DNA of 64,000 nucleotides from Octopus sinensis (lineage: Eukaryota): the NCBI RefSeq assembly GCF_006345805.1, contig NC_043004.1, positions 12,276,001 to 12,340,000 on the forward strand, written 5' to 3'. The notes beneath the pieces were generated by a model. It saw only the letters and a program-made list of their open reading frames with translations. It was not told the DNA's origin and made no database searches. The translations under genes and the position numbers were made by a program. Of the stretch, positions 14,301-23,300 are shown in pieces (within the stretch, counting starts at the first letter, position 1; each line of letters begins with the position of its first letter).

Positions 14301-17300
14301 GCCATGCTGGAGCACCACCTTTAGTCGAGCAAATCGACCGCAGGACTTATTCTTTGTAAGCCTAGTACTTATCCTAACAGTCTCTTTTGCTACAGGGATG
14401 TAAACACTCCAGCATTGGTTGTCAAGCGATGTTGGGGGTACAACGCACACATATACATATAGATATATACATACATATATACGATGGGCTTCTTTCAGTT
14501 TCTGTCTACCAAATCCACTCACAAGGCATTGGTCAGCCCGAGGCTATAGTAGAAGACACTTGCCCAAGGTGCCATGCAGTGGGAATGAACCCGGAACTAT
14601 GTGGCTCGTAAGCAAGCTACTAACCACACAGCCATGTGTTTCTATGCAGCTGTAAATGTATGTGCCAGTGTGTGTGTGTGTGTGGTACGTGACATGTTTG
14701 TCTCATCATCATTGCCATCATCATTTAATGTTCGTTCTTCACGTTGGCATGGGTTGGACAGTTTGACAGAATCAGGTGAACCAAGTTCCAGTGTCGGCTT
14801 CGGTATAGTTTCGATGGCTGGATGCTCTTCCTAATGCCAACCACATTACAGTGTATATTGAGTGCTTTTATTTGGTGCCAAATAAGTTTCATGACAGAAA
14901 AAGAGTAAAAAAGGATAAATAAAAAACAAAACCCTCATTTGGTGGCAGAGAGAGTATTAGGGAGAGGGTGGTGGTTTTAAGCCAGGTGTTGAGAGGGACG
15001 AGCACAGGTGTCTTGCTTTGAGAATGTTATATTAATGTTGCTTTCTTCTATTGCAGATTGATACCTTGGAACTAAAAAGTAGTGAACCTAGCCCAGGGTT
15101 GTGTGCCTTTGATCCCTTCGATAATTCAACAGCCATTTTAGTCCGTAAGTTACTTCCCTACTTTTCTTATTCTTGTTCCTTAGTTTACATGTGCATTTGT
15201 GGTGTATGTGTGTGTGTGAGCGTACACTTGTGGTATCATAAGAATTTTTGAGAGGTGTTTAAGTTGTAGCATTAATGCGGTGTGTTGTACTTCTAGGTAC
15301 GTGTCGGTGCTGTAGTTTTGTGGTGTAATGGCTTTGTAGGTGTGTGTGTGTGTGTGATAGAGTTGTAGTATTTTTGTGGGCCTTGCAGAGGCAATGACGA
15401 AAGACCAAGACCTTGAGCTTTGGGCCTCATATTGGCAATGACGAAAGACTGAGACCTCTGGAGATCTGATGTGACTGTGAAGACCTGACAAATAAAGTGA
15501 GTCTACAGTGTATCTTACACCAGCTCCACATAACCAGCCCCAGCCCATTCAAAGTACCTTAGATTGTTGGACAACCTGCTGTGCTGACCTTGGATCATAA
15601 GGTGACCTGCTGTGCTTGAGGAGACCTATTGAATCAAGTACATCAACATCAACATCAAAATAAAATTCAAATGGAAATTGTAGTTGTGATACCTGTGCCA
15701 GTGGCATGTAAAAAGCACCAACCAATCGTGGCCGTTGCCAGCCTTCTCTGGCCCCCATGCCGGTGGCACATAAAAAACACCCACTACACTCACAGAGTGG
15801 TTGGCATTAGGAAGGGCATCCAGCTGTAGAAACACTGCCAGATCAGACTGGAGCCTTGTGCAGACTCCTGGCTTCCCAGACCCTGGTCAAACCGTCCAAC
15901 CCATGCTAGTATGGAAAATGGACGTAAACGATGATGATGATGTTATTGTTGTGTTTAGGTATATACACTGGTTTGTAGGATCCTGTGGTGTGTTGATTAT
16001 GTGTGTATGTTTGTAGATCTATCTATCTATCTTTTTTCCTATTTGTCTATATACCTGTTTGCCTGTCTGCTACCTTTCTATATATCTACATTCATATACA
16101 TATGTGTGTGTGTGTTTGTGTGTGTTTGTGTGTGTGTGTGTGTGTGTGTATGTATATGTATGTATATATATATATATAAAAGTTGAGTTGTGGGGTATCG
16201 CACCAGTGGGATTATATAAGAAAAAAGGTTTGAAAATGCAATTTAAACGATGTTTATTACTTAACCGTTTCACTCTTTGGTAAAAGATTGTCAAAAGTTA
16301 CATTTAAGGAAACATTGAATAATATGGGTTCAAAAAAAGTTTTTTACATAATTGTCACATTGAATATTATGCATTCAAAAAAGTTTTTTACATAATTGTC
16401 ACATTGGATATGAATTCAAAAATGTTTTTTTATACATAATTGTCACATTACATGTATAAATATAATGTTTGGTAACAGAGAAGTTCAATAGTGTGATGAG
16501 AATATTTGGGAAAATTTGGCAGAAAAGGATAAAACAAATATATTATTGGGAATTGGTTGCGTTAATTATTGGTTGTCGCAAATTGTCACATTACATGTAT
16601 ATATATACAATCTTTGGTATATATATACAGCCTTTTGACAGCAAAAATTAAAATGTGAATTGAATGTTGTTATTTACACTGTTGATAAGGTTTTTGAAGT
16701 CTATAAGTTGGTCGAGTGTGTGGGACCATAGGATGAGGCAATCATCTAAGTAGCGTTTCCAGTTCTCCAACAGGTATTTGTGGAAAGACTGGCCGTACTT
16801 ATATTTGGATTTTTCATAGATATGTGATTCCAGGTAGGCCATCTAGATATGTGATTCCATCTAGATTTTTCATCTAGATTTTTCATAGATATGTGATTCC
16901 AGGTAGGCCACATAGATATGTGATTCCAGGTAGGCTACCTGTTGGAGAACTGGAAACGCTACTTAGATGATTGCCTCATCCTATGGTCCCACACACTCGA
17001 CCAACTTATAGACTTCAAAAACCTTATCAACAGTGTAAATAACAACATTCAATTCACAATGGAATATAGTCAGGACCAACTCCCTTTTCTTGACATCCTA
17101 ATCATTAAAAAAGGCGTCAACATTGAAACTGACATCCATTACAAACCCACTGACTCTAAACAATACCTTCTATTCACCTCCAATCACCCCAAACACACAA
17201 AGACAAATATCCCCTTCAACCTAGCGAGAAGAATCTGCACTATGTCTCAAATGACACAACACGAAATAGAAGACTCCGGGAATAAGGGCAATTCTTCTCG

Positions 17301-20300: not shown

Positions 20301-23300
20301 CCACACACACACACACACAAACACACACACACGTGCACACACACACACATATGTATATGAATGTAGATATATAGAAAGGTAGCAGACAGGCAAACAGGTA
20401 TATAGACAAATAGGAAAAAAGATAGATAGATAGATCTACAAACATACACACATAATCAACACACCACAGGATCCTACAAACCAGTGTATATACCTAAACA
20501 CAACAATAACATCATCATCATCGTTTAACGTCCATTTTCCATGCTAGCATGGGTTGGACGGTTTGACCAGGGTCTGGGAAGCCAGGAGTCTGCACAAGGC
20601 TCCAGTCTGATCTGGCAGTGTTTCTACAGCTGGATGCCCTTCCTAATGCCAACCACTCTGTGAGTGTAGTGGGTGTTTTTTATGTGCCATATATATATAT
20701 AATTTGTATGTATATATATTTGTATATAGATATTTGTCGTGGCAGCACATGTTAGTATCATTGCATTGTCATGTGAGCTGTTATTGATGTGTCTAGGCTT
20801 AGTGACTGTGTGGGCCAAATTACATAGTTTGTCCTTGTGATGTGTCTAGACATAAGCAGGTGATACACTGACTGACCAATTATAATGGTGCTGATGTTGT
20901 CATGTTCAGATGCTGTGTCATTCCAACCCAGCAGACTGTAACAGTGAATGGTTGCCATTGTAGTAGCAGTGGTGATGGCGGTGGGTTGTTGATATTGATG
21001 TAGTGTTTTTAATACATCTATGTCTGTATGTGTGTGTGTGTGTGTGTGTGAAAGAGGGAATCTATATGTGATTAGCGCTTGCAGACTCTCTTCACCATTT
21101 CTCTTCTGTACATCTGAATTCTGCTTTGTTTATCTACGTCATCTGTGATTTTAGTTTCTCTAAGAGTGGCAGACTGAGAGTAGTAAATTGCTAAACCGAA
21201 TTGTCTAAGAGTGTAGAATCTCTAAGTTATTCGGTAAAAATATTATGTGGTATTTAGTTATTTGGTGTTCAAATTCCTCCAAGTTTGTCTCATTGCTTTT
21301 CATCCTTCCAGGGTTGATAAAGCACCAATCAAGTGCTAGAATGGATTTAAATTTCTGTCCTTGTGCTTTTGGCAATAAATCCTCATTTTGCTTTGTCTGC
21401 GTGCTTGTGGTTCTGCCTGTCTGTATGTTTGCTTTCTGTATAGTCTAGTCCATTATTTATCTGCATGTTGTGGTTGTGTGCTTAAGAAGCTTGCTTCCCA
21501 TTCGTACAGTTTTGAGTTCAATCCTACTGCATGGTACCTTGGGCAAGTGTCTTCTTCTACAGCCCCCCAGAATGAATCAAAGCTTGCAAGTGGATTTGGT
21601 AAGAAGCCCCTCATGTGTGTGTGTGTGTGTGTTCCCATGTCTTGACATCACATGATGCTTGCAAGCAAGCATCATCATCTTCGTACAGGTGAGGTTTTGT
21701 TTGTTTTCCAGTCTTCCAGAAAAAAAAACATGTCTAGGTATGGGAAAATGTTACCTTGCTCATTGACCAATACTTCTCATTGGTCTGTCTTGCTTATTCT
21801 CTATTGAGGGTGGTGCATTGACTGGATCATTTAGTGATTTGGACAAAATACCTAACGATATTTATTTTGGCACTGAGGCTGCAAATTGGTTGAACTGTCA
21901 CCAAACTGGAAAGAAAATGCTTAGCAGCGATTCTTCTGATTTTAGAGTTTCAGTGCCACCAGAGTTAGAGTTTCAGTGCCACCTTCCATCCTTTTGAGGT
22001 CAAAAAGTGAGTACCAGTTCTAAATTTAAGAGATGAAGAATTATGTACATTATTTACATTTGATGCATATTTGTCCTCATCTTGTTTGTTGTTAACACAA
22101 CGTTTCCGCTGGAGGGTATATCAGCCGAAACGTTGTGTTAACAACAAACAAGATGATGACAAATATCTGTCAAATGTAAATAATGTAAAGTAAGTACCAG
22201 TTGAGCATTGGGCTCAATATAATCGACCTATCTCCTCTCCTAAAATTGCTATCCTTGTGCCAATACATGAAACCAATACTTTAAGTACACTGCAAGGCGG
22301 TGACGTGGCAGAATCGTTACCGCACCAGCAGAATGCTTATCAGAATGCTTTTACGTTCTGAGTTCAAATGCTACCGGGGTCAACCTTGCTTTTCATCTTA
22401 TCCTTTTTAGAGTTGATGAAACAGTCACCAGCTGAGCACTGGGGTTGATGTAATCAACTTCCCACGACCACCACCAACACCCAAAATTGCTGGCCTTGTG
22501 CCAAAATTTGAAACCAATATTTATTCTGGCAATTTGTATTAATCATCTGACTTTTCCATGCTTGCATGGGTCAGATAGAAATTGTTGAGGTAGATTTTCT
22601 ACAGCTGGGTGCCTTTGATGTCCCCAACCCTCACTTGTTTCCAAGCATAGTAATATTTGCCATGGGCAGACATGTTTTTTCATTGAATATCGGACATGAA
22701 CAACATTGCTCGTATGGTGATAAAAGCTAGTTTGCAATAAGCATAACATATCAAGACAACGGTACATGCAAACACACACACACATCATCATCATCATCAT
22801 CATCGTTTAACGTCCGTTTTCCATGCTAGCATGGGTTGGATGGTTCAACCAGGGTCTGGGAAGCCAGGAGGCTGCACCAGGCTCCAGTCTGATCTGGCAG
22901 AGTTTCTACAGCTGGATGCCCTTCCTAATGCCAACCACTCCGTGAGTGTAGTGGGTGCTTTTTACGAGCCACCGGCACAGGGACCGGAGCTGGCTGGCAA
23001 ATGGCCATGATCGGTTGGTGCTTTTTACACGTCACCGACATGGACGCCAGTCAAGGTGTGTATGTATGAATGAATGACAAGATTCTTTAAGTTTCCATTT
23101 CCCAAATCTACTCATAATCCACTCTTTGGTTGATCCCAATCTATTGTTGAAGACACTTGCTCAAGGCAACATACAGTGGGAACTTGAGACCATATGATGA
23201 GAAAGTAACCTTCTCAACCAAATATTATATAATTTTAGAAAGTTTTCTACCTTCACTGATTTAAAAAAAGACATAAAGGTATATCTCTAACTCAGCTGCT

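Follow-up and report, generated by a model that had tools for sequence, protein, structure and literature searches.

Penelope-like elements (PLEs) are known to insert as highly 5'-truncated copies, and an inverted, likewise 5'-truncated copy adjoins the 5' end (Craig et al. 2021, PMC8557442). Their insertions frequently carry a tail of 30-40 bp, are biased towards microsatellites, and cause problems in genome assemblies (PMC8557442). Palindromes, microhomology-mediated joins and internal deletions have been described at their inverted junctions (Arkhipova et al. 2013, PMC3846280), and the capture of host DNA by PLEs has been attributed to read-through transcripts and template jumps (PMC3846280). 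In vitro, a PLE protein is reported to cut and extend both strands of its target, unlike R2 or L1, and to nick AT-rich DNA (PMC11167929). Here we describe an insertion from Octopus sinensis, found within a stretch of 64,000 nucleotides (RefSeq assembly GCF_006345805.1, contig NC_043004.1, positions 12,276,001 to 12,340,000 of the forward strand), which is called the window below and whose own numbering is used throughout. A PLE lies there in an intron of a semaphorin gene, together with two nested inverted repeats. The locus is a PLE head-to-head insertion of the known kind, to which a small inverted duplication of the host flank has been added.

Anatomy of the locus and its Penelope-like element

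The structure occupies 15764-20689. The duplicated host segment is called H, and family A is the short interspersed element (SINE) family to which the SINE at its outer end belongs. The parts, with the features that touch them directly, are as follows:

15645-15945, + strand: left family-A SINE, complete, with a 5' leader, 1.3 tandem units of ~66 nt, a core and (GAT)n as tail; 15764, the repeat boundary, falls within this SINE
15764-16176, + strand: left copy of H, host DNA made up of SINE core, unique stretch, (TG)n and (TA)7, forming the outer part of the left arm
16177-16656, - strand: inverted copy of the PLE 3' end, collinear with 19759-20247
16654-16842, - strand: inverted fragment of the reverse transcriptase (RT), recognized by its open reading frame and tblastn matches, with a TGT overlap with the inverted PLE 3' end
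16843-16935, - strand: stutter, in which the terminal 27-69 nt of the RT fragment are re-copied several times
16936-18013, + strand: coding region of the forward, 5'-truncated PLE, comprising the RT from YLDD on, a linker and a GIY-YIG endonuclease
18014-19758, + strand: PLE 3' untranslated region, present in the forward copy only
19759-20247, + strand: PLE 3' end of the forward copy, forming the inner part of the right arm
20248-20689, - strand: right copy of H, inverted, made up of (TA)19, (CA)n, unique stretch and SINE core (20498-20689), ending ATGTGCCA
20690-20701, no strand: (TA)6 adjoining the right arm on its outer side, with unique sequence of the intron after it

BLAST comparison of 15600-20900 with the window aligned the outer arms (15764-16656 and 20689-19759) at 94.4% identity over 934 columns, 44 of which are gap columns (E = 0), and the inner arms (16654-16776 and 17058-16936) at 100% identity over 123 bp. 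The nested inverted structure is real and far above chance. An initial annotation of the window, made from its letters, had described slightly diverged outer arms of about 0.9 kb, identical inner arms of 123 bp, and a 3-nt overlap (TGT) of the RT fragment with the inverted PLE 3' end, and all of these were recovered here. The TGT is common to both pairs of arms, the outer homology reaching 16656 and the inner arm beginning at 16654, and the symmetry centres of the two pairs lie at ~18207 and ~16856, respectively. Ungapped blocks within the outer arms are 96-99% complementary. Global alignment revealed that most gaps are length changes of microsatellites, namely in (TA)n, with 7 units in the left arm and ~19 in the right arm, and within (TG)n.

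With the microsatellites left aside, the two copies of H differ by one substitution and one single-base indel in ~337 nt, and the PLE arms differ by five substitutions and eight indels in ~478 nt. The frequency of substitutions shows no difference between H and the PLE part (1/337 vs 5/478, P-value = 0.41, Fisher test), and the comparison among H, the outer PLE arms and the inner arms likewise revealed none (P-values = 0.41 and 0.59). H is less diverged than the PLE part only if homopolymer indels are counted (P-value = 0.03), and these may be assembly errors; six of the eight indels in the PLE arms are single-base changes in homopolymer runs. A gradient of divergence across these three segments was therefore dropped. 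Because the H arms differ no more than the PLE part does, the duplication of H probably came together with that of the PLE arms or followed it, and did not precede it by long. Differences that do not stem from slippage are also present between the arms, namely the insertions GCACG and ACAGCC.

On the evidence of its coding sequence, the element is a PLE in broken form, as the initial annotation had proposed. The RT is present only as its C-terminal part, in which the YLDD motif and the downstream RT/thumb region are in frame; after ~3 frameshifts a CX2C-containing linker and then the GIY-YIG domain follow in the forward copy. This endonuclease, C-terminal to the RT, was recognized at residues 290-378 of the conceptual translation (Pfam PF01541, E = 5e-5, 24 bits against a cutoff of 22.6). 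In a large protein collection, 251 homologues were obtained at E <= 1e-10, from molluscs, and many of them carry RT (PF00078), GIY-YIG and HTH_animal domains. The closest named homologue is a protein of Octopus bimaculoides with 83% identity. An exact look-up of a 191-aa open reading frame of the window returned no record. The window holds a single PLE (tblastn), in which residues 1-201 of the O. bimaculoides relative are unrepresented, and BLAST and tblastn found no other copy in the window that could fix the ends of the element. The forward copy is without the part matching residues 1-223 of the relative (tblastn), and the reversed RT fragment corresponds to residues 202-264 of the relative P0018 (tblastn). 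In agreement with the annotation of 16654-16842 as reversed RT, this segment read in reverse is one open RT frame, and it reaches 66 nt further 5' than the start of the forward copy at 16936.

The 3' untranslated region begins with ~140 nt of CA-rich sequence; a TG-rich block of low complexity (18150-19540, 1.4 kb) comes next and gives way to unique sequence. The switch from CA to TG in this region (18014-19540) falls at a short (TA)n, and the TG-rich block has a GC skew of +0.41. The block after the open reading frame of the O. bimaculoides relative is CA-rich, a strand bias opposite to that of the window copy, which could reflect an internal inversion or independent growth of microsatellites. 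Within the PLE 3' end there is a 44-bp tandem repeat of ~3 copies (16312-16449 and 19971-20111), where the arms differ by small indels. Furthermore, a 40-nt stretch in both arms (16178-16217 and 20208-20247), between (TA)n and the start of homology with the relative, is a candidate PLE 'tail', and its length fits the described 30-40 nt. As for other Rfam RNA families, only sub-threshold microRNA matches were obtained, mir-297-like ones included, all in low-complexity DNA.

The PLE locus of O. bimaculoides (L001) offers a comparison for the layout. Its nucleotide identity with the window is 85% over 16936-18015 and 86% for the RT fragment (L001 10603-10789), and its open reading frame is followed by a low-complexity block, as in the window copy, and is flanked by an inverted repeat of 219 bp (8733-8951 vs 13163-12949). 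Upstream of its forward copy, a (TA)n at 8244-8276 adjoins an inverted PLE 3' end at 8277-8379, which is ~80% identical to the reverse complement of window 20101-20212. The flank past this (TA)n is unrelated to H, and H is not duplicated there. To judge by its sequence, this relative has the same layout of (TA)n, inverted 3' end and forward copy, and is without an H duplication. Because the PLE of the relative ends at (TA)n with an unrelated flank beyond it, the (TA)n is where the window PLE ends too, and H belongs to the host and not to the element, which agrees with the initial annotation. The relative's locus holds another inverted repeat (7212-7555 and 7848-8188) of 340 bp, with 87% identity and a 292-nt spacer, bracketed by microsatellites; it lies ~55 nt upstream of the (TA)n/PLE border and has no match to the window. 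It may be a foldback element or one like a miniature inverted-repeat transposable element (MITE), or another local palindrome.

Junctions and the order of events

The stutter at 16843-16935, annotated between the RT fragment and the forward PLE, was found to have a period of 27 with 100% match. All three passes stop at one template position, ...GGTAGGCCA, and because of this identical end the stutter looks like run-off at a template end followed by re-priming, a further hint of template jumping by a reverse transcriptase. The stutter itself ends at 16935/16936 in a 15-nt palindrome, CAGGTAG-G-CTACCTG. Microhomology amounts to 3 nt (TGT) at 16654-16656 and to CA-type overlaps of 2 nt inside the stutter, and the junctions 16935/16936 and 20689/20690 have 0-1 nt.

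The outer boundary lies in family A, of which at least 20 copies are present in 64 kb, in both orientations and at about one per 2.5 kb. On their 5' side, members carry a variable array of ~66-nt units, each headed by a quasi-palindrome (GTGCCRGTGGCAC), and their tail is (GAT)n; 14 copies were taken into the alignments. The right copy ends in ...TTATGTGCCA directly before TATATATATA at 20689/20690, i.e. ATGTGCCA is followed by (TA)6. The SINE copy at 38076-38254 stops at the base where the right one does, and it is likewise followed by TA-rich DNA. The left copy runs past the boundary, in register, to ~15645, and its leader (15645-15691, 47 nt) is common to the copy at 10779-10825. The initial annotation was thus accurate in placing the outer boundary at the end of a truncated family-A copy before (TA)n, in reporting an independent copy with an identical end, and in noting that the left copy continues beyond it. 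The boundary is also the centre of a quasi-palindrome, GTGCCGG/TGGCAC, in a 14-bp stem between unit heads, a site whose sequence suggests that it could stop reverse transcriptase and DNA polymerase alike.

Family-A copies include those at 15645-15945, 10779-11021, 22780-23029, 38076-38254, 35713-35880 and 9606-9765, besides others. Two pairs of copies have identical 5' ends, one being the copies at 35880 and 9606, which both start CACTACAC, and most copies adjoin (TA)n or (TG)n, which suggests recurrent truncation points and a microsatellite target preference for the family. Target-site duplications were considered for dating the two SINEs; an apparent one, a match of 9 out of 11 between TTGTAGTTGTG (15680) and TTATTGTTGTG (15929), falls inside the 5' leader shared with 10779-10825 and was dropped, and no convincing target-site duplication was found at either H SINE. 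A metagenome scan with a 24-mer unique to H gave no match.

The anatomy, the identity of the element, the host nature of H and the layout of the relative are observed; the order of events, the polymerases and the direction of copying are what we infer in the following. We give roughly an even chance to an origin in two layers, in which a canonical head-to-head PLE insertion at (TA)n was followed by a fold-back or hairpin-primed copy of the flank. In the first layer, the PLE would have integrated head-to-head at (TA)n in the semaphorin intron, with one cDNA primed per DNA strand. The left cDNA would have copied 489 nt of the 3' end, jumped to the RT region via the 3-nt TGT microhomology, run to one template end three times, which gave the stutter, and then joined the 3' end of the longer right-hand cDNA at the 15-nt palindrome. 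The product would have been a 5'-truncated forward copy together with an inverted 3'-end copy, both abutting (TA)n. The second layer may belong to the same repair or be of later date. A fold-back primer, supplied either by the inverted repeat of the PLE or by (TA)n, which is self-complementary, would have let DNA synthesis add a copy of 413-442 bp from one host flank to the opposite side. In the slightly favoured version the right flank is the original one: the new strand would have ended in a copy of the short right-hand SINE and annealed to the pre-existing opposite SINE on the left, and the clipping of its non-homologous tail would explain why the junction lies exactly at the right SINE end and in register with the left SINE. 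An inverted capture partner would have been readily available, because family A occurs about every 2.5 kb in both orientations.

The first layer is suggested by features of published PLE insertions. The inverted, 5'-truncated copy adjoins the 5' end of the forward copy (16177-16842 is inverted relative to 16936-20247), and both PLE 3' ends abut (TA)n, as does the inverted 3' end in the O. bimaculoides relative. These hallmarks, the layout of the relative without an H duplication, and the reported ability of a PLE protein to cut and extend both strands make it more likely, by analogy, that the inner junctions (jump to RT, stutter and fold-back) come from PLE integration rather than from a host replication error. 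The unusual feature is the extent of the repeat, which carries on past the PLE for another 413-442 bp of host DNA made up of (TA)n, (TG)n, unique sequence and a 190-nt part of a family-A SINE. Since no described step of PLE retrotransposition duplicates the adjacent flank in inverted form, a copying event at the DNA level is needed, and the extension into host DNA appears real and at the same time a fairly ordinary rearrangement. The interpretation of the whole structure in the initial annotation is thus retained in part: the PLE, the host nature of H, a family-A SINE at the outer junction, an inverted host copy made at the DNA level and, as a prediction, a long double-stranded RNA all stand. 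A single host replication accident around a simple PLE is not supported as stated, because the hallmark layout has been published for PLEs and recurs in the relative without the H duplication.

Several points weigh against the two-layer origin. The order and direction of events are read from this one assembled sequence rather than observed, and two events are needed where one replication-based event would do. Among the differences between the arms, many are indels in homopolymers, for which assembly errors could account. The junction at 16935/16936 is essentially without microhomology, so its mechanism is a guess. Furthermore, no hammerhead ribozyme was recognized (no Rfam family at E <= 1 over 14000-22000), and no pseudo-long terminal repeat (pLTR) or direct terminal repeat was found at the locus; both are expected to be missing from a 5'-truncated copy, so their absence does not exclude PLE membership.

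The evidence on which arm is ancestral tilts slightly towards the right one. Its end is a natural 5'-truncation point of family A, and SINE-SINE annealing with tail clipping would put the junction at the right SINE end, in register, without coincidence. On the other side, the left SINE is intact and of the same subfamily on both sides of the boundary, and its outer unit is a rare variant shared solely with the copy at 22780-23029, to which the SINE core is most closely related as well. The right H has (TA)n at either end, which is how an insertion of the PLE and an inverted H into one tract would look. The boundary is a quasi-palindrome where either polymerase could let go, and identical 5' ends recur elsewhere in family A (35880 and 9606). 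The polarity of the arm differences, with the relative or the SINE consensus as outgroup, was tried as a criterion and is silent on direction, since derived states occur on both arms.

A single replication-based event, of the type called fork stalling and template switching (FoSTeS) or microhomology-mediated break-induced replication (MMBIR), is unlikely, and it is the alternative that survives best. A simple forward PLE and the right flank would be ancestral; synthesis that began at the left SINE would have gone backwards along 0.9 kb of the right arm, switched to the RT, stuttered and come back at 16936, and the PLE 5' part and whatever lay left of it would have been deleted. All junctions would then come from one event, which would account for the collinearity of the arms across the PLE/host border and for their uniform substitution divergence (P-value = 0.41, Fisher test). 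The TGT at 16654-16656 and the templated stutter are what such switching would leave, the right SINE end is the natural end of the copy at 38254, and the inverted RT fragment holds 66 nt gone from the forward copy, as if taken from a longer forward template. However, the resemblance to the canonical head-to-head layout, seen also in the O. bimaculoides relative, would be a coincidence. Of the four switches, three fall within the PLE, the microhomology at 16935/16936 and 20689/20690 is only 0-1 nt, and a microhomology-driven switch would have to land in the last 10-20 nt of a 190-nt SINE homology.

It is distinctly unlikely that PLE integration itself duplicated the host flank in one retrotransposition event. 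Cleavage and priming of two strands would have taken place at the self-complementary (TA)n, and the polymerase would have jumped between the cDNAs and copied on through the PLE 3' end into the sister or folded-back flank. If this were true, PLEs would repeatedly give rise to long inverted duplications of host DNA and to intronic double-stranded RNA in cephalopod genes.

The order of the two layers might also be reversed, such that a host palindrome, H-(TA)n-inverted H, arose first by fold-back at (TA)n after a break and the PLE later inserted head-to-head into the central (TA)n. The (TA)n at both H/PLE borders and outside the right arm, and the left SINE that is intact across the boundary, fit such a history, and the central (TA)n would have been a preferred target, as PLEs favour microsatellites and AT-rich sites. 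Nevertheless, the H arms are no more diverged than the PLE arms, if anything less, two independent events at one site would be needed, and the end point shared with 38254 would be left to chance or to the quasi-palindrome. We regard this history as improbable.

An assembly artefact, i.e. a chimeric read or a mis-joined haplotype inverted at (TA)n tracts, is very improbable. The tract is its own reverse complement, is poorly sequenced and stands at three junctions; tandem and inverted PLE structures trouble assemblies (PMC8557442); six of the eight PLE-arm indels are homopolymer length changes; and the substitution divergence of 0.6% is within the range that we assumed for haplotypes. However, the differing symmetry centres (~18207 and ~16856) do not agree with a simple fold-back read, the junction 20689/20690 did not arise from a (TA)n overlap, as 15763 is not TA, and the GCACG and ACAGCC insertions are arm differences of a non-slippage kind.

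Least probable of all is 3' transduction, in which H would be sequence that flanked a source PLE elsewhere on its 3' side and came in with a read-through transcript (a known route of host DNA capture, PMC3846280, compatible with internal initiation on RNA, PMC11167929) and the arms two-strand-primed cDNAs of the PLE 3' end and H, ending at one base by construction and in register on the left because the SINE target paired with SINE sequence in the RNA: a SINE truncated at its 3' side and adjoining (TA)6 is required as the target, unless a target deletion is added, BLAST found no source locus within the window, and H differs less than the PLE part though both would be reverse-transcriptase copies.

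Host gene and predicted RNA duplex

The structure lies downstream of the following exon:

15057-15144, + strand: semaphorin (Sema-domain) exon upstream of the structure, with AG/GT borders and a Sema-like peptide

From the end of this exon at 15144 to the start of the left arm at 15764 there are 620 nt, the distance given in the initial annotation. More exons on the + strand lie near 5353-5456 and 36077-36200. A distant semaphorin orthologue with both matched exons is present in ENA ERZ21867824 (contig ctg107945l), where the exons are 79% identical in nucleotides and are spaced by ~84 kb, compared with 31 kb in the window. Given this identity and this spacing, its introns were rejected for a comparison of orthologous introns.

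Because the host gene is on the + strand, both arms are expected in its pre-mRNA. Co-folding of the arms predicted pairing of 885 of 893 nt, with uninterrupted helices of up to 190 bp, and a perfect hairpin is predicted for the inner 123-bp arms. The long double-stranded stem expected in the initial annotation therefore holds as a prediction, with a co-fold of 885 bp. Intronic inverted repeats are common ADAR substrates, and ADAR editing of this duplex is plausible on the predicted structure. The near-perfect RNA duplex of 0.9 kb predicted here would begin 620 nt after a coding exon of a neural gene, and it is a reasonable place to seek hyper-editing or small RNAs.

PLE integration is poorly understood, and the locus gives a well-resolved view, at the level of single bases, of an insertion with a jump, a run-off stutter and a palindromic join. 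The extension of the repeat into host DNA suggests that an inverted repeat made by a retroelement, or a (TA)n target, can seed the growth of a local palindrome, with a SINE giving the outer junction. Nothing at the locus is unexpected for a repeat-rich cephalopod genome. Elsewhere in the window, the region 46000-50000 shows a strong excess of C over G (GC skew ~-0.35) and is rich in microsatellites and SINE fragments; tblastn found no PLE coding sequence there.

Comparison with described systems

Fold-back inverted duplications are made by FoSTeS/MMBIR and by snap-back synthesis at inverted repeats or AT-rich palindromes. The present structure resembles them in its spacer, its short or absent microhomology, its templated insertions and its SINE-SINE outer junction. 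It differs in that the seed was probably an inverted repeat made by a retroelement, and in that it is small (0.4 kb of host DNA) and contained within one intron. Twin priming of L1, reportedly described by Ostertag and Kazazian in 2001, is said to join two cDNAs from opposite strands head-to-head by microhomology and to leave an inverted 5' segment. Opposite-strand cDNAs of one target joined head-to-head are the common feature; in contrast, L1 inverts the 5' part of one copy, with neither a duplication of the 3' end nor an inverted duplication of host DNA.

In their possible consequence for RNA, the arms are comparable to inverted Alu pairs, which are intronic inverted-repeat ADAR substrates. 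In both cases opposite repeat copies in one pre-mRNA form a long near-perfect duplex, here by prediction. The arms of the present locus are 0.9 kb long, lie 3.1 kb apart and consist of PLE and host DNA, whereas an Alu pair consists of two independent SINE insertions.

As regards host sequence joined to a PLE insertion unit, the nearest cases are the Pen1_Av spacers and the NRPS (nonribosomal peptide synthetase) gene copy in Adineta vaga, for which read-through and template jumps have been invoked (PMC3846280). There, unique spacers between direct pLTRs were moved to new loci (PMC3846280), whereas here the flank was duplicated inverted and in place.

The closest systems are the head-to-head insertions of endonuclease-positive PLEs (Penelope/Poseidon, Neptune and Naiad; Arkhipova 2006; PMC3846280; PMC8557442). 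Compared with these, the inverted repeat of the present locus extends past the element by 413-442 bp of host DNA, the truncation of the forward copy falls within the RT, the stutter has several passes, and neither pLTR nor hammerhead was detected. What the locus shares with them is an inverted copy of the 3' end directly upstream of the forward copy, 5' truncation, a junction with palindrome and microhomology, a microsatellite or AT-rich target, a possible tail of 30-40 nt, and an RT with a C-terminal GIY-YIG endonuclease.

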